Sequence record: NC_031126.1
Direction: 5' to 3' (one strand)
Length of the DNA: 64,000 nucleotides
A program made the translations under genes and the position numbers. Below the pieces are notes generated by a model, which worked only from the letters and a program-made list of their open reading frames with translations, was not told the origin of the DNA and searched no databases. How positions within the stretch are numbered: the first letter of the stretch is position 1; each line of letters opens with the position of its first letter. Shown in pieces: positions 6,204 through 63,802 of this stretch.

Positions 6204-6565
6204 TGTTAGCGTCGCTGGTGATGGAGTGTGCCACCCGCGGATACATTCTCCCTAGCGTCCGACAACAACATCACGTTACGACGATTCTGCGTGAGAAATA
6301 CAATTTCATGTTCACCACGCATGAAGTCAATTTTAAACGTATCTACGATATTGTACGAGACCATCTAGCCGAAGTCATTTACGAACTCCGTACCGAGTTA
6401 CGAATGATTCTCGACACCCACAACCTGACCCAGACCGATTTGTATTTTACGCCTGTCGACTTAGTGCAGTGTCGTTATCACATTCGGTCTTTAGAAGAAC
6501 AAACCATAGATGCTTTGGCATTAAGGACTAGCGATGCAGTTAATTCTCGATTTCTCGCTCTCTGA
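6203..6565 (+). CDS. Hypothetical protein
   Basis: TGATG coupling at 6201-6205 gives the probable start at 6203. Confidence 0.6.
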   Translation: MLASLVMECATRGYILPSVRQQHHVTTILREKYNFMFTTHEVNFKRIYDIVRDHLAEVIYELRTELRMILDTHNLTQTDLYFTPVDLVQCRYHIRSLEEQTIDALALRTSDAVNSRFLAL

Positions 6566-7079
6566 TTCACGCGTTGCCTTGAATAAGGCTTTGGGTGAAA
6601 TGAAAGCAGAACTGACGTTTGAAGTCAATGAAGCGGTAAGTAAGTACGAAAACAGTAAGAAGTCCGAAACAGGTAAGCCGCACTACCTGGTTGAGTCTGC
6701 TGCTGTAATCGATACGGCTATCTCCTACATCACTGACAAACTCCGGAACATTCTTCAGTTTCCGCATCGTATTCCATTTCTCTGCTACGAATCGATTGAA
6801 GAAATCCTCGCATTGATTCAGTCTGGCTTTACTTCAGCATCGCAATCGCTGGACGAAATTGCCACTATCAACATCAATGAAGTGTACGTCTCGATTCCAC
6901 GCGAGTGGGACGAGTCAGTTAACACGTTTGAAATGGTAGGGTTATCGGAGTTATTTGATTCCGAGTCTATCCTTACCATGGATAACATCATCAAGCACGC
7001 CCAGGATAAAGTCATTCAAATCTGCCGTAACGAATTGGCCTACAATCTGGAGTGCATGCAAAAAGCGACCAGCGTATGA
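6534..7079 (+). CDS. Hypothetical protein
   Basis: 181-aa ORF in the operon. Confidence 0.65.
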   Translation: MQLILDFSLSDSRVALNKALGEMKAELTFEVNEAVSKYENSKKSETGKPHYLVESAAVIDTAISYITDKLRNILQFPHRIPFLCYESIEEILALIQSGFTSASQSLDEIATININEVYVSIPREWDESVNTFEMVGLSELFDSESILTMDNIIKHAQDKVIQICRNELAYNLECMQKATSV

Positions 7080-7558
7080 AATTGATAATCAACTTCACAC
7101 CGGAAGGGCATGAAGACGTCTGGAAGAAATTGATGGGCGATTTGTTCTCCAACTATCGGCCAGTCATTGACCAAATGCTACCAGATATGACCGAAGGTGA
7201 GGTGTGTGCAATACTGCTGGGGATGCTTGACCCTCTGTACACACCGATTCGTAAGTTGTCTGAAGCGGTGCTGGTGTTCGAGTTCGATTCAACCGATGTG
7301 GATGGCGGTATCATTGAAACTAATGTATCTCAATTTACGTTGGACAATCGAGTACAGGTAACCCTGGAGGAAATTCGCCAGGGTATATACAGCGGGCATG
7401 TTAATCATGCGGGCGATACATTAGAAGCCTATGGGCGCGAAGAACGTGAGGCGTTTTACCAGCATGTCGAAAAACAGCTAATGGCATTGGTAAAAGACCT
7501 GTACGAAAAAACCTTCGCTGATGTGTCAGAGATTACATTCCACTTTTCGAAAAAATAA
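7076..7558 (+). CDS. Hypothetical protein
   Basis: ATGA overlap with the upstream stop, followed by a terminator. Confidence 0.7.
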   Translation: MKLIINFTPEGHEDVWKKLMGDLFSNYRPVIDQMLPDMTEGEVCAILLGMLDPLYTPIRKLSEAVLVFEFDSTDVDGGIIETNVSQFTLDNRVQVTLEEIRQGIYSGHVNHAGDTLEAYGREEREAFYQHVEKQLMALVKDLYEKTFADVSEITFHFSKK

Positions 7559-7566
7559 ATAAAGAC

Positions 7567-7603
7567 CACCACTCCGTAAGGGGTGGTGTTGCTTTTACTT
7601 TTT
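7567..7603 (+). terminator. Intrinsic terminator
   Basis: CACCACTCC-GTAA-GGGGTGGTG plus T tract. Confidence 0.75.
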
Positions 7604-7625
7604 AACACCATTAAGGAGAATCACA

Positions 7626-8513
7626 GTGAAATTTTTAACTATGGCTGAGGCTAAACGTATTCCAGAAAGCCGTATCCAGTATCGCGAAGATATTTGGTTT
7701 GGTCTGTTAGCACAAAGTTACGATAAAAAATTTGGTATCTCTTTTGTCGATGATTATCTTAAAACCACGAACGGTGAAATCGATAATACCTTTATCCCAT
7801 TCTCTTACCAAAAGTCCATAATCCACGACGGTCAGCCCTGCGAATCCGCTTCTTTATCATACGGCTACTATTACGGCGGCGTGACAGTCCACATCGATCA
7901 TGGGAAGTTGGTTGAAGTTTTAGAGACTGAGCCTTTAGAGGATGTCCCATTGGCATGGCTTGACTACATACCAGGCTGGACAACGCACTTTCCACTGAAG
8001 GACCCAAAAATATATTCTGGGTTTTTTCTGGCAAGACGCGTCGATGATAGCGGCCAGATTCTTGTCTTTGGGAAGCCGAAGGATGACGGCCACACGGAAA
8101 TCTTTACGTACCGGATAAAAGAAGTCGAGGGTCGGTGCTTTACCTTAACCGATGAAGACGGCACGGTAATTTCACCTGTACTATTTCGATTTTTCCAGGC
8201 TCTGCTGTTCTTCTGCTCACTGATACCACATAAGCCTGCGCTTCCGAAGGTGTCTAAGCAGACACGTAAAGGGGGTGTGGTGGATTACCATATCCAGCCC
8301 CTTAAAGAAACCCGTGAAGTTCCACTCAATGAGGTTGTCGCCGCGTATGTTGCTGAACATCAGTCGGGTAACAGACAAGCGCCAAGTTCAAGGAAGGCTC
8401 ATTTCCGACGTGCCCATTGGCGCTCTGTGTGGTTAGGGCCACGTACGGGTGAACAGATTAAAGATATGCGCTGGATTCCAGCGACTGTTGTTCGGGGTTA
8501 CAAACCCGAATAA
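7626..8513 (+). CDS. Hypothetical protein with basic C-terminal HxRRxHWR motif
   Basis: AAGGAG RBS, GTG start, C-terminal RKAHFRRAHWRSVWLGP...WIPAT. Confidence 0.75.
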   Translation: MKFLTMAEAKRIPESRIQYREDIWFGLLAQSYDKKFGISFVDDYLKTTNGEIDNTFIPFSYQKSIIHDGQPCESASLSYGYYYGGVTVHIDHGKLVEVLETEPLEDVPLAWLDYIPGWTTHFPLKDPKIYSGFFLARRVDDSGQILVFGKPKDDGHTEIFTYRIKEVEGRCFTLTDEDGTVISPVLFRFFQALLFFCSLIPHKPALPKVSKQTRKGGVVDYHIQPLKETREVPLNEVVAAYVAEHQSGNRQAPSSRKAHFRRAHWRSVWLGPRTGEQIKDMRWIPATVVRGYKPE

Positions 8514-58664: not shown

Positions 58665-58724
58665 CAAAAAATAAAGAGAACTAGGTACCTACCCGTCGCG
58701 GGGTAGGTACCTATTATCTTTTTT
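58665..58724. terminator. Bidirectional terminator
   Basis: TAGGTACCTACCC-GTCGCG-GGGTAGGTACCTA flanked by A and T tracts. Confidence 0.85.
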
Positions 58725-60096
58725 AACTTGCAATACCGCGAATCAAGAAATACAACAAGAGTGCATTACGTACCGCAGCCAATGCTGCGTTATTGGTCAA
58801 GTGCGTTTCTTTTTTCACTAACTTCTCGATGCGTTCACGCAACGACAGAACATATTCGTTGGTGGTCTTCGATGACTGATACAGGGCACGCATACGGTTC
58901 AGCAAGAACGCCACGTCTTTGAAGTTGATGCGGTTGGACACAATCAAATCGAAGGCGTGGGCCAGAGCATCCTCCATAATCGACTCCATGTCTTTGCGAG
59001 TCTTGCCCAACGGTTGGCTGGCGATGTACACCAACACCGTCTTCATGGCCACTGGGGATGCCTTAGGCACCATCTCTAGACATACGCGGGCTAACTCCTC
59101 CTTGTAGAAGTTGTTAATGTCCCACGAGGCATCCAAGAGTGTTTGCTTGGCGGTGTTCAATGCGGTCACTTTATCGCGGATGATAGTTTCACCATCGAGA
59201 TCAATCTTCGACGATTGATTTACCACGCGCGAGTTCTCACGACGCACCCGGTCAAGTACCGCGTAGTAGTCTTTCACCGTTTGTTTGGTACGGGTGTTCA
59301 AGTCGGTGATAAAACGGATCAGCAGGTCGGGGTGGTTGAACGCTTTCACTTCGTTATAATGCGGTGATTCCTTCGAAACGAAATACTCCGCTCGTTCAGT
59401 CAGGTGTTGTCCCCAGTTACCCATACGGCGGATGTCGAACTTCAATGACAACTGTGAGTATGCTGCATCAGCGGCATTCATATCCACCGGCTTTGGGAAG
59501 AAGTGATAGTAGATACTGGAGTAAAATTTGAACTGGAGTAGCTTCACCAAATCGACACAGGCGTTGTAGATATTTCGATCAGCGAACAGGGGCATCATGC
59601 GATGTACCATGTAAGTAATCGCCAGATTGAACGTGTTACCGGCTACCGCCCATTCGCCGTTAATGGTTTTGGTTTGGTCGATGTTGGCCTGCAATAAATC
59701 CTCGTCAACCTCCAGCACCTGGTCGAACAGTTTGTTTCTGTCGCTGTCAAAGAACCGAATGGTGTGAACCCCTAAAAGGTTTGAACCAAACCATTCAACG
59801 TTACCTTCACGGCTGAATATCCCATCCACGTACGAACGTATCGCGGTGGCCAGGCGTTTATCGAACGTAACTTTCTTAAAGGCATCGTCAAAGGCTTTGC
59901 GCAGCGCATCGGTTTTAATGGCTTCTGATGCGACTATCTGCCGGGTGGGTAAATATCCACCAAATCCGTAATCGTAATAGAGGCCATCACCTTCATCATA
60001 CTCGTCATCAAAGAATCCACGACGGGCTTCTTGGGCGACTTGTCCACTGGACTCTATATACATGCCTTTGTCGAAATCAAATATTAATTCTGACAT
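58723..60096 (-). CDS. Probable head protein with acidic N-terminal propeptide
   Basis: GAGG RBS, AQE at 21-23 and ASE at 56-58 bracket an acidic Tyr/Gly-rich N-terminus. Confidence 0.65.
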   Translation of the reverse strand: MSELIFDFDKGMYIESSGQVAQEARRGFFDDEYDEGDGLYYDYGFGGYLPTRQIVASEAIKTDALRKAFDDAFKKVTFDKRLATAIRSYVDGIFSREGNVEWFGSNLLGVHTIRFFDSDRNKLFDQVLEVDEDLLQANIDQTKTINGEWAVAGNTFNLAITYMVHRMMPLFADRNIYNACVDLVKLLQFKFYSSIYYHFFPKPVDMNAADAAYSQLSLKFDIRRMGNWGQHLTERAEYFVSKESPHYNEVKAFNHPDLLIRFITDLNTRTKQTVKDYYAVLDRVRRENSRVVNQSSKIDLDGETIIRDKVTALNTAKQTLLDASWDINNFYKEELARVCLEMVPKASPVAMKTVLVYIASQPLGKTRKDMESIMEDALAHAFDLIVSNRINFKDVAFLLNRMRALYQSSKTTNEYVLSLRERIEKLVKKETHLTNNAALAAVRNALLLYFLIRGIAS

Positions 60097-60118: not shown

Positions 60119-60138
60119 GATAGATATTATCCTTGTGA
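60119..60138 (+). promoter_or_regulatory. Putative early promoter GATAGATATTATCCTTGTGA
   Basis: Copy of the 20-bp motif, 24 nt before ATG 60163. Confidence 0.65.
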
Positions 60139-60162
60139 CTATACCATAAGGAGTTTTAAGCC

Positions 60163-61290
60163 ATGAATAACTTACAACGCAAAGCTGTATGGCGTCGACG
60201 GTACGCCACCCCCGGTTATGACCGCACAAAGTCTGTTACCATGTGGGTATTACCACACGGCTGCATGTGTACCTTGCAGCAAGTTGGGGGTCAACCTATC
60301 CTGGATAATGGAACGTATTCAGCAGCGAATACGCTGCTGGCGAATCTGTTGAATGAAGCCGGTATTACCGGTTCGGTGATTGTTTACTCCACCGAAGTAA
60401 TTCCACAGAACACATCACGTTGGCTCACCTGGTGGATGTCCACCAACCCAACGCTTGATGATCCGCTTTTACGGACTATCACGGTGACATCGTTTGGGCA
60501 AGTTCCGAAGAAGATCCTGCCATTCCATGTCAATGTGATTGAGCCGTTAAACTTACGGGCATGTGATGTATTGGACACCATCCGTACACAGTCCCGTAAT
60601 CCTGCGGTATCTATCTTCATTCTTGAAGAAGATGGCGTGAAGTACCGGATGGAACCCGAAAGACGAATGGATGCCAAGGTGATCGATTGCACTAAATACG
60701 GGTACGTGCTACGTACTCCATCGAATCACGTCTTCCTATCGTCTATGGTTTCCCGTCGCGTACAGGGACAGTTGGCCCAGCACGGCCTGCGTCCCGAAGA
60801 CCTTATCGGTGCTACCGTAAAGGTCGAGTACACAATGTTCACAGACGGCAATCGCTTATGCAATTACAAGTCACCCATTGTGTACCGCTGCGTGTCACTC
60901 GATAACATGAGTGACGGAATCGTCCCCCCATACCATGGCCCCTATCTGTTTATATCGAACACCCCGGAGGAAAAGGCGCTGCTGACCGCCACCCGTTGTG
61001 GTCGTGCGAAAATAAACGTTTTTGATGGGGCACTTGTGGGGCGTGACGATGAGACCGACTTGAATCTGTTCGCCTTCCGTAAAGGAGCGGAGGAGGGGTT
61101 GTATTCTGCAACCTTAGAACGTGATGGCAAGACGGAAGAATGGCGTTTCGATTCTGACTTTGCGATAGATGCCCTTGATCCTGAGGCTTTTATCCGTTGT
61201 GTGGACAGCAATCTGTTTTACGCAACCGGGTATAACGTCGTGAAGATTGGTCTCCGATACGTCGATCATACACAGTCGCCGATATCATAG
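60163..61290 (+). CDS. ATP-dependent DNA ligase-like fold lacking KxDG (putative pseudo-ligase)
   Basis: AAGGAG RBS. Colinear resemblance to minimal viral ligases, including an OB-fold end LIGATVKVEY..TDG...PIVYR. Confidence 0.5.
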   Translation: MNNLQRKAVWRRRYATPGYDRTKSVTMWVLPHGCMCTLQQVGGQPILDNGTYSAANTLLANLLNEAGITGSVIVYSTEVIPQNTSRWLTWWMSTNPTLDDPLLRTITVTSFGQVPKKILPFHVNVIEPLNLRACDVLDTIRTQSRNPAVSIFILEEDGVKYRMEPERRMDAKVIDCTKYGYVLRTPSNHVFLSSMVSRRVQGQLAQHGLRPEDLIGATVKVEYTMFTDGNRLCNYKSPIVYRCVSLDNMSDGIVPPYHGPYLFISNTPEEKALLTATRCGRAKINVFDGALVGRDDETDLNLFAFRKGAEEGLYSATLERDGKTEEWRFDSDFAIDALDPEAFIRCVDSNLFYATGYNVVKIGLRYVDHTQSPIS

Positions 61291-61299
61291 GAGTGCGTT

Positions 61300-61809
61300 A
61301 TGTTCACTGCACCGACAATCAGTTCCGTACAGGAGTTGCGTGTAGTCTGCCAGGACAATCGTCTCGCTCAGCTATGCGACGAAGGCATCATTACTGCAAT
61401 GATGAGCTATAACCCGAATGGAAACTACAGTAATACAGTCGAAATACTGACCGTGGCCGCTGTCCTGAAACGGTTGAAAGGTAACCTCACTGTTGAGAGC
61501 CTTTGCATGTTCCTGGACAACCACGGTGCAATAGCCAAAGGTATGTTGGCATTAGTGCAAGACGGAGTGTCTACTTTCGATAACAGTATTGGTAACTTCC
61601 TGGACATCAGTTCCGGATTCGAAAATGGCAAGTTCTTCGTAAGCAAAGAGCGGTACGATAGTGTATGGACTTATCTGGGGATGTGCGGTGTTGCCGTTCC
61701 TCAGGGAGTCCGAAACTTTCAGCTGTACGACATCAACGTCTTCGGCGAACCAGGACTCTGGATTGAGCCGGTTACCTTAGGTCTTGATGGCTACAGCATC
61801 CGTGCTTGA
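61300..61809 (+). CDS. Hypothetical protein
   Basis: AGGAG RBS. Confidence 0.7.
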   Translation: MFTAPTISSVQELRVVCQDNRLAQLCDEGIITAMMSYNPNGNYSNTVEILTVAAVLKRLKGNLTVESLCMFLDNHGAIAKGMLALVQDGVSTFDNSIGNFLDISSGFENGKFFVSKERYDSVWTYLGMCGVAVPQGVRNFQLYDINVFGEPGLWIEPVTLGLDGYSIRA

Positions 61810-61814
61810 TAACT

Positions 61815-61850
61815 AACCTGTACTGCTTCGGCAGTACAGGTTTTATTTTA
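61815..61850 (+). terminator. Intrinsic terminator
   Basis: AACCTGTACTGC-TTCG-GCAGTACAGGTT plus T tract. Confidence 0.88.
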
Positions 61851-61875
61851 TTTATTTCACCATTGAGGATTAACC

Positions 61876-62424: not shown

Positions 62425-62457
62425 AAAACCGGGGAGCTTCGGCTCCCTGTTTTTTTT
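62425..62457 (+). terminator. Intrinsic terminator
   Basis: GGGAGC-TTCG-GCTCCC plus T tract. Confidence 0.85.
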
Positions 62458-62799
62458 GTTCCGAGCCTTGGTACTGCTCACTTTTTAATCAACAATTGGT
62501 TACAAAATAGCCAGTGCGAAATAGCTCCTAGAATCGCTCAGAAGGCAACGATAACCTAACCCGGTACACTTGGGTTCCCAAGGGTGAGATAATGCATTAC
62601 AGCGCCATACAGGAACGATAAGCGCTATCGTCGACCCGGTGTTCCGACCACGATGCCCGTCGTCGAGGCCGAATCGCCGATCTAAAACTGGGTACCGCTT
62701 TGCGGAATTGGAGATTTAAAACAGGGAAATCTGACAAACGAATCTTGGTGAGTTTGTCCTGGATTTGGTTACTTTTTAACCGATTACACTGCCAGCCTT

Positions 62800-63070
62800 C
62801 AGCTGGCTAAGTTTTAATCACTTTAAAAAAATTCTCTTTTAAAAACAGTTACTTACATTCTATCTACCCTACCCCTCCGGGGGTAGGGAAAAGATCCCTT
62901 CTATTAGTCGCGACGCGCAGGCGCGCCATTTCCTACAGGATCTTTTAAAAGAATATATTTATATTAATTATAATTATCCCGTAGGGATAATAATTAAATA
63001 TAATTAAAACTAATAAACTCTTTGAGTTATAAATTACTATCGCGGGCGTGTGGGCGCGCACGAGTCCTTA
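62800..63070. other. Palindrome-rich AT core flanked by CG boxes, candidate replication origin or packaging site
   Basis: 62941-63040 is 85% AT by count, several inverted repeats, no ORF. Confidence 0.45.
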
Positions 63071-63802
63071 GCTTGCCGTTGACCTGGTTAAAAAATAACC
63101 AGCGGAAATCCAATTACAGATTTTCCCAGTGTTATGCTCGATGGCATGACTCGACCCATGTCGTCATCCAAACCCCTGGTCGGTAAGTTTGGCCAGGGGA
63201 CTTTTCGAGCCCACCTCACGACAGGGTGAGACGCGCTTACTGGCGATGGTTGCCGGGTACGGTCCCGCTGTGCTGATCCCGCAGCGGGTATTTTTCTCAT
63301 CCTGCACTGGATTGCTGTGTTCGCCTCGGTACGCGGGGCGCTTTTTCGAGAGTCCTCACCAGGGTTGTCGACAAAGCGAAAATACGTTCGACCTAACACC
63401 GACGTGATTTTGTTTTAGTATGTTCAAGCGTTTCAGGTTCCAGTCGGGCTTTCACCCCGTACCGGTACCGCGGTAGCCCCAGGCAGAGCCTTGCCCTGGC
63501 GGACCGTCATCCGTCGTCCTTGCCGGTGAACTTACCACTGGCCTATCGTCGGTGAGCGTTCTCCTGGGGTGCGACCGAATTCGGCGTTGCGTCGAAAAAC
63601 TCCCAGCGTGTAGAACCGCTGGGTTGGGGGGATATCTCCGAAGCGAGGTGGTCCATTGGTCTTGGCGGCTCGGAAAGACGAGAGGGGGGTGTCTGCACTC
63701 TGTGAAGCGTTCGGACATCGCTGAACCAAATTCGGATTATTTTTTACAGGTTGGGGTGTTCTTGTGTTCGAACCCAACTTGCCAACACCAGGGAAAATAA
63801 TC

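Follow-up and report, generated by a model that had tools for sequence, protein, structure and literature searches.

The open reading frame at positions 60163–61290 (+ strand) of the window, that is, the final 64 kb of the 244,840-bp genome of Erwinia phage vB_EamM_ChrisDB, encodes a protein whose predicted structure and family-wide sequence pattern clearly mark it as derived from an ATP-dependent DNA ligase, with the catalytic residues lost. ChrisDB is a jumbo phage and a relative of Salmonella phage SPN3US. The region is a single reading frame of 375 codons, and its product is 100% identical to ChrisDB gp284 (KX397366), which is annotated as a hypothetical protein. A first-pass annotation of this DNA had picked out the motif WVLPHG in the frame, at the place where a ligase would carry its adenylated lysine, and had proposed a ligase fold that lacks this residue. 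The frame and the motif (W28-V-L30-P-H32-G33) are present as described, and both the fold and the missing lysine hold up in our analysis. Two features go beyond that proposal: judging from sequence comparisons, the C-terminal domain of gp284 is a fused partner protein, and some orthologues still carry the lysine.

We modelled gp284 with AlphaFold2 using 24 homologues as input (mean predicted local distance difference test score, pLDDT, 88) and compared the model with known structures. Foldseek returned 38 matches in the PDB at E ≤ 1e-3, nearly all of them DNA ligases, with Chlorella virus ligase (1p8l) the best at E 1.9e-6. A VIA-align comparison with 48,161 representative chains ranked T4 ligase (Z 10.6, 235 residues aligned), Pmar-Lig (Z 10.4) and Chlorella virus ligase (Z 10.2) first. 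These top ligase matches all span residues 1–248 of the model, and matches to OB folds alone span residues 166–250. Furthermore, about 50 viral DNA ligases in the viral structure library BFVD match the model. The resemblance to ligases is far stronger than chance would give. As modelled, residues 1–165 form a nucleotidyltransferase-like domain and residues 166–248 an OB fold, which together make up the two-domain core of ATP-dependent DNA ligases. At the level of sequence gp284 has no significant match in Pfam, and neither gp284 nor any of 42 family members matches PF01068 or PF01653 even at E ≤ 10. Searches of PDB sequences with gp284 and with two profiles gave no match, and a search of the ESM Atlas was uninformative (scores 0.77). 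In PHROG, residues 1–374 align with positions 1–375 of the 377 in phrog_8136, a full-length match (E 6.7e-189) to a family of unknown function.

In DNA ligases the nucleophilic lysine of motif I lies in a K-x-D-G sequence that occupies the turn of a β-hairpin. The gp284 model has such a hairpin at residues 24–41 with H32-G33 in the turn, and here the sequence reads L30-P-H32-G33. G33 is the sole invariant residue in the alignment of 42 family sequences. The VIA-align alignments also begin at points that, with the established numbering of the lysine in many superfamily members, bring this catalytic residue to within a few positions of residue 30. We assign L30 to the lysine site because the hairpin, the invariant glycine, these start points and a K-x-x-G sequence in 15 of 29 short orthologues, described below, all point to it. 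The first-pass annotation had suggested checking position 30 in homologues: of 36 distinct long forms, not one has a lysine at position 30 or 31, and H32 does not vary within the close clade, though about half of the short forms keep the lysine.

The remaining nucleotidyltransferase motifs are also degenerate. Profile–profile alignment of the gp284 family with T7-type ligases by hhalign gave a weak but collinear match (E 0.012 locally, 0.005 when extended), which is useful for motifs III to VI only, as the register of the N-terminal stretch that holds motif I is unreliable. Motifs III, IV, V and VI of the T7-type ligases follow each other in the same order in gp284, and the segments named in the first-pass annotation fall on these four motifs in that order. 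At motif III, whose glutamate contacts the ribose in ligases, G70 pairs with the glycine of the T7 sequence D-G-E, but gp284 reads T69-G70-S71 and position 71 varies across the family. The motif IV sequence E-G-L-I-V-K pairs with the S150-I151 strand of gp284, from which the acidic/lysine pair is gone. At motif V the T7 sequence W-K-M-K-P-E pairs with Y-R-M-E-P-E, so that its lysines correspond to R162, which is variable, and E164; together with P165 and R167 these are the residues of the degenerate motif V. The motif VI region pairs with the stretch around G229 and R231, and the same alignment sets K7 against a lysine close to the N-terminal end of T7 ligase. No family member retains the motif III glutamate or either of the two motif V lysines. 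Ten positions only are conserved across the whole family (G33, G67, G70, W87, S144, P165, R167, G216, Y223 and G229). None of these is a lysine, and because no lysine is conserved family-wide a displaced, spatially equivalent nucleophile, the possibility that would have restored a normal ligase, appears unlikely on sequence grounds, all the more with motifs III, IV and V also gone. With the residues of motifs I, III, IV and V replaced, the classical lysyl-AMP route is closed, and the role of the protein is therefore expected to be a non-catalytic one.

We examined how this state arose by collecting homologues. By tblastn, gp284 has homologues in 61 phage records from jumbo phages of Erwinia, Salmonella, Escherichia, Cronobacter and Proteus; almost all of them are recorded as hypothetical proteins, and a single GenBank record bears the label 'putative DNA ligase'. 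A profile search of 1.8 billion representatives recovered just 46 proteins, which comprise long forms of 340–416 residues, like gp284, and about 29 short forms of 241–272 residues that consist of the ligase-like core alone. By their position the short forms are orthologues of gp284: Vibrio phage pVa-21 and a metagenomic contig of 235 kb share the gp284 arrangement, in which terL and some small genes are followed by an orthologue of the neighbouring gene gp283 on the opposite strand and then by the gp284 family gene. Among the short forms, 15 of 29 read K-P-x-G, with the lysine at the canonical motif I position (the lysine background is 6%), and 27 of 29 keep the 'DG' of motif IV. A maximum-likelihood tree needs about 7–8 gains or losses of the motif I lysine, and it places the long forms in a single clade (support 99/97) that is sister to a lysine-bearing short clade. 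Given this history, the lysine looks like a decaying relic under relaxed constraint, with no requirement for it. The orthologues thus capture stages of the decay, with the lysine kept in half of the short forms, repeatedly lost, and absent after the fusion.

Some deposited homologues are irregular. Those of Salmonella phages SPFM1 and SPFM7 match the family profile in many short stretches only (15 for SPFM1), which suggests frameshift errors in the assemblies or gene calls rather than true divergence, and SEGD1 apparently holds only a partial copy. The literature that we searched contained nothing on SPN3US gp263 and no description of an inactive ligase-fold protein in a jumbo phage.

The first-pass annotation had noted a further domain of about 125 residues behind the ligase-like core, and our models agree: residues 273–375 modelled separately gave a pLDDT of 87.6. 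The PDB holds no fold match for this domain (best Z 3.6; Foldseek E 0.3), and its isoelectric point (pI) is 4.3–5.7 in 12 of 13 long forms. The BFVD fold search with the gp284 model picked up a 134-residue protein of pVa-21, and BFVD entry A0A1S6L228 matches the C-terminal domain. A hidden Markov model (HMM) of the domain matched two small genes, each just downstream of a short form: pVa21_192 in pVa-21, after a gap of 9 nt (E 2e-10), and a 123-residue gene on the metagenomic contig, after a gap of 10 nt (E 6e-9); as a control, the next genes downstream scored E > 0.3. By this homology, the C-terminal domain is a partner protein that is encoded by a separate gene in short-form phages. Because the long forms make up one clade, the tree indicates that the fusion arose once, in the SPN3US/Erwinia lineage. 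Following the usual logic of a Rosetta-stone fusion, the ligase-like core and the small partner protein would work together.

Upstream of gp284 lies a promoter-like motif with the core GATAGATATTAT (Table 1). At up to one mismatch the genome holds 16 copies of this motif, every one of them on the + strand and most of them 30–90 nt upstream of open reading frames, compared with 0–4 in shuffled genomes, and as a class the copies are flanked by A/T-rich sequence on the left and a CTnGGTGA-like sequence on the right. Of the genes that follow the other copies, almost none has a known function. In such jumbo phages the AT-rich early promoter of the virion RNA polymerase is described as the one conserved motif that sequence analysis can detect (PMC7598289), and we consider the motif to be probably the early promoter set read by this polymerase. 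Because of its 16 copies and the published description, early expression of gp284 is likely. The early-type promoter of the first-pass annotation is thus a real, repeated motif, from which the early timing is deduced. No sigma-70-type promoter was found upstream of gp284. The gene also appears to share one transcript with the next gene, gp285, which would be ended by a strong hairpin directly after gp285. A homologue of gp285, whose family phrog_9731 has no assigned function, is present in 54 phage records, and in those checked it comes immediately after the gp284 homologue; gp285 is absent next to the short forms at the loci checked and has no Pfam or PDB match.

Table 1. Features of the gp284 locus and copies of the upstream motif (window positions unless genome coordinates are indicated).
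Feature	Position	Strand	Basis or remark
gp283, 457 aa, phrog_2921	58723..60096	-	divergent neighbour; core gene; orthologue of phiKZ gp32
Promoter-like motif, core GATAGATATTAT	60119..60130	+	A/T-rich stretch upstream, CTnGTGA downstream
Ribosome-binding site AAGGAG	60148..60153	+	9 nt before gp284 ATG; read from sequence
gp284 residues 1-165, predicted nucleotidyltransferase-like domain	60163..60657	+	degenerate motifs I/III/IV/V; model, fold searches, motif tables, hhalign
gp284 residues 166-248, predicted OB-fold domain	60658..60906	+	basic (pI 9.2), motif VI-region relic (G229, R231, L232, K236); fold searches, charge, hhalign
gp284 residues 249-272, linker at fusion joint	60907..60978	+	lower pLDDT (76-82 in full model, 64-69 in domain model)
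gp284 residues 273-375 and stop codon, predicted acidic C-terminal domain	60979..61290	+	pI 4.6; model, HMM homology to free-standing small protein
gp285, 169 aa, phrog_9731	61300..61809	+	9-nt gap after gp284, no terminator between
Intrinsic-terminator-like hairpin	61815..61852	+	12-bp stem and T-rich tail; directly after gp285
Motif copies in window (included among the 16 genome coordinates below)	4213, 13373, 60119	+	up to one mismatch
Motif copies, genome coordinates	8452, 25264, 26671, 57749, 72376, 73181, 92700, 94973	+	up to one mismatch
Motif copies, genome coordinates (continued)	102474, 107411, 132932, 166774, 175860, 185053, 194213, 240959	+	up to one mismatch

The position of gp284 in the genome is more widely conserved than its sequence family. 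The divergently transcribed neighbour gp283 is a core gene with an orthologue in every related jumbo phage tested, among them phiKZ (gp32), PhiPA3 (gp17), 201phi2-1, Moabite, phiKT1019, FLC1-1B, pVa-21 and RAY (gp187). These orthologues always adjoin a divergently transcribed gene for a protein of 250–400 residues, in some lineages this gene is the ligase relic, in others its sequence is not recognisable, and gp283 thus marks a conserved genomic slot that holds gp284. The proteins found in this slot in phiKZ (gp33), PhiPA3 (gp18) and RAY (gp188) have no sequence relation to the family or to one another.

Phages that carry the gp284 family and phages that carry a canonical ligase do not overlap in our sample. 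In whole-genome Pfam scans, no NAD- or ATP-dependent ligase domain was detected in ChrisDB, SPN3US, pVa-21, CR5, Wellington or Asesino, all of which have the family, and LigA is present and the family absent in PhiPA3, 201phi2-1, Moabite, phiKT1019 and FLC1-1B. The two occur together in none of the 12 phages tested. The twelfth, phiKZ, has neither the family nor a canonical ligase, which implies that this phage group can use the host ligase. The exclusivity could reflect a single historical event, as the family-bearing phages may form one lineage.

We hypothesize that gp284 is a non-catalytic binder or scaffold, a reading that we regard as probable on the basis of sequence, model and analogy. 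The protein would be made early in infection and would work without a lysyl-AMP intermediate. Nucleic acid, be it a nick, an end or a duplex, would be held by the basic OB domain and by the former active-site cleft, which is still conserved, and the acidic partner domain would contact another protein, possibly gp285, a replication protein or the host ligase. In most family members the OB domain stays basic, with a pI of 9–10, which makes nucleic-acid binding plausible. The first-pass annotation had pictured a non-catalytic protein that encircles DNA or binds nicks or ends, for example to protect genome ends; the non-catalytic ligase fold stands and nucleic-acid binding is in keeping with our data, but our results lend no support to the encircling of DNA or the protection of genome ends.

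Several observations weigh against this hypothesis. The nucleotidyltransferase-like domain is neutral to acidic in many members, and at the pattern-aligned site of the DNA-contacting Ser-Arg of ligase motif Ia gp284 has Asn-Gly, so that canonical clamping of a nick may also be lost. The residues that are still conserved cluster at the former active-site motifs, which could mean a ligand or a new chemistry instead of a plain scaffold, and the strict absence of a ligase from the six family-bearing phages could mean that gp284 still joins DNA. Furthermore, the early timing derives from the motif and not from RNA, and the equation of L30 with the catalytic lysine comes from the hairpin, the glycine, the K-x-x-G sequences and the alignment starts and not from a residue-level superposition.

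One alternative is that gp284 is the real DNA ligase of this clade, or another nucleotidyltransferase, still active through an unusual nucleophile or cofactor (for example K7, or H32, which is invariant in the clade) and with the partner domain supplying the missing functions. The conserved residues at the former motifs, the lack of a Pfam-detectable ligase in six of six family-bearing phages, the five related LigA-bearing jumbo phages that lack the family and the lone 'putative DNA ligase' label would all fit such an enzyme. However no nucleophile candidate is conserved, since position 30 is occupied by K, L, M, V, I, Y or Q, position 32 by T, S, V, R, H or K and position 7 by K or R; the motif III glutamate and both motif V lysines are gone throughout; and the motif I lysine has been gained or lost about 7–8 times. 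The example of phiKZ shows in addition that a host ligase is usable, and the phyletic pattern may be one event in one clade. We therefore consider an active enzyme unlikely. We give slightly less credence to a pocket protein that, like snurportin, binds a small nucleotide or the 5' end of an RNA; as an anti-defence sponge it could, for example, soak up nucleotide signals or NAD-derived molecules early in infection. Residues 1–166 do match capping enzymes (Z 6.3) and snurportin (Z 6.2, 13% identity), the cleft motifs are conserved, the aromatic residues W28, W87, W91 and Y161 are invariant in the close clade, and the probable early promoter would suit a host-takeover gene. Against this, the best and longest matches are to DNA ligases and include the OB domain (Z 10 versus 6), sequence searches matched no known family of sponges or cap binders, and the basic OB domain points to a polymer as the ligand.

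About as doubtful as the pocket protein is an adaptor that carries the NAD-dependent ligase (LigA) of the host to phage DNA or into the phage nucleus, in line with the recruitment of host ligase suggested in the first-pass annotation. The lack of a ligase of their own in the six family-bearing phages, mutual exclusivity with a phage-encoded LigA and an acidic, fused domain of the kind that binds proteins would agree with it, and for other jumbo phages Iyer et al. proposed that a ligase DNA-binding domain standing alone has a similar recruiting role (PMC7824862). The phage phiKZ nevertheless does without both proteins, and the phyletic correlation is confounded by phylogeny because it lies within one clade. 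Least probable of all, in our view, is a purely structural or assembly protein with no role on nucleic acid, such as a packaging or head-associated factor. The gene does lie three genes from terL and near virion genes, and the record of the gp283 orthologue phiKZ gp32 carries the note 'structural head protein', but the upstream motif is of a type expected for early rather than late genes, the basic OB domain is conserved, and no homologue has a virion annotation.

Among known systems, gp284 is most similar to the minimal ATP-dependent ligases, such as those of Chlorella virus PBCV-1, T7 and T4 and bacterial Lig E, with which it shares the nucleotidyltransferase and OB core, the size and the strand order, and whose motifs I, III, IV, V and VI persist as relics in the same order in the gp284 family. 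Unlike these enzymes it lacks the motif I lysine, the motif III glutamate, the motif IV acidic/lysine pair and the motif V lysines, it has no sequence match in Pfam or the PDB, and it carries the extra fused C-terminal domain; by its sequence it is no member of the ATP-dependent ligases in the enzymatic sense. The LigA proteins of jumbo phages (PhiPA3 gp257, 201phi2-1 gp332/333) have the adenylation-domain superfamily fold in common with gp284 (Z 7.5–7.9), but they are about 700 residues long, have intact motifs and are readily detected by Pfam. PhiPA3 gp257 has been described as a nucleus-localised replication protein (PMC10643120).

Two other systems show what a dead nucleotidyltransferase fold can do. 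The middle domain of poxvirus A20 (A22 in monkeypox virus) is 'an inactive DNA ligase' in the DNA polymerase processivity factor (PMC11142717). Like gp284 it is a virus-encoded inactive ligase module with a nucleotidyltransferase subdomain and an OB domain, in this case as a structural part of the viral replisome, and pox processivity factors are among the fold matches of gp284 (8q3r_A; 8wpf_B, Z 6.3; Q6TV90, E 2.5e-5). A20 has no sequence relation to gp284 and has other flanking domains, and it bridges the polymerase and uracil-DNA glycosylase. We regard it as the nearest working analogy, of independent origin. The m3G-cap-binding domain of snurportin-1 is likewise a covalent nucleotidyltransferase fold, dead as an enzyme and retained for binding, but it comes from capping enzymes, has no such OB arrangement and matches gp284 far more weakly than DNA ligases do.

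As an enzyme fold that would have been turned into a binder, the gp284 family presents a clear case, and it may bear on a wider problem of phage replication. Nucleus-forming jumbo phages seal their DNA off from host proteins. To our knowledge, many of these phages, phiKZ and the present clade among them, have no recognisable DNA ligase of their own. The sealing of lagging-strand fragments and nicks in such phages therefore calls for an explanation, and the gp284 family is a concrete, testable candidate for a role in it because it is conserved, probably early, clearly descended from a ligase but without its chemistry, fused to a Rosetta-stone partner, and exclusive with phage LigA in the phages tested. 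A more speculative extension, which we think has little chance of being right, is that the relic and its partner form a phage device that replaces a phage-encoded ligase in this clade, either by delivering host LigA to replicating DNA in the phage nucleus or by sealing without lysyl-AMP. In nucleus-forming phages that are more distant, the same slot (RAY gp188, and perhaps phiKZ gp33 and PhiPA3 gp18) would then hold more diverged versions of it.

In Erwinia phage RAY, gp188 and gp189 together span positions 6339–7679, and gp189 begins 9 nt after gp188, like the partner gene of the short forms. The 285 residues of gp188 equal the length of a RAY protein in BFVD that Foldseek matched to the gp284 model (E 4.9e-4). 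This makes gp188 a lead for a ligase-like protein in the slot, the link being the equal length alone.

Two further observations concern the surroundings of the gp284 locus. At 58682–58713, between the convergent genes gp282 (+) and gp283 (-), there is a perfect hairpin with a 13-bp stem that is terminator-like on both strands. The stretch of about 1.3 kb beyond gp286, at 62450–63760 and near the end of the deposited genome, which the first-pass annotation had called origin-like, holds a single small annotated gene, gp287.

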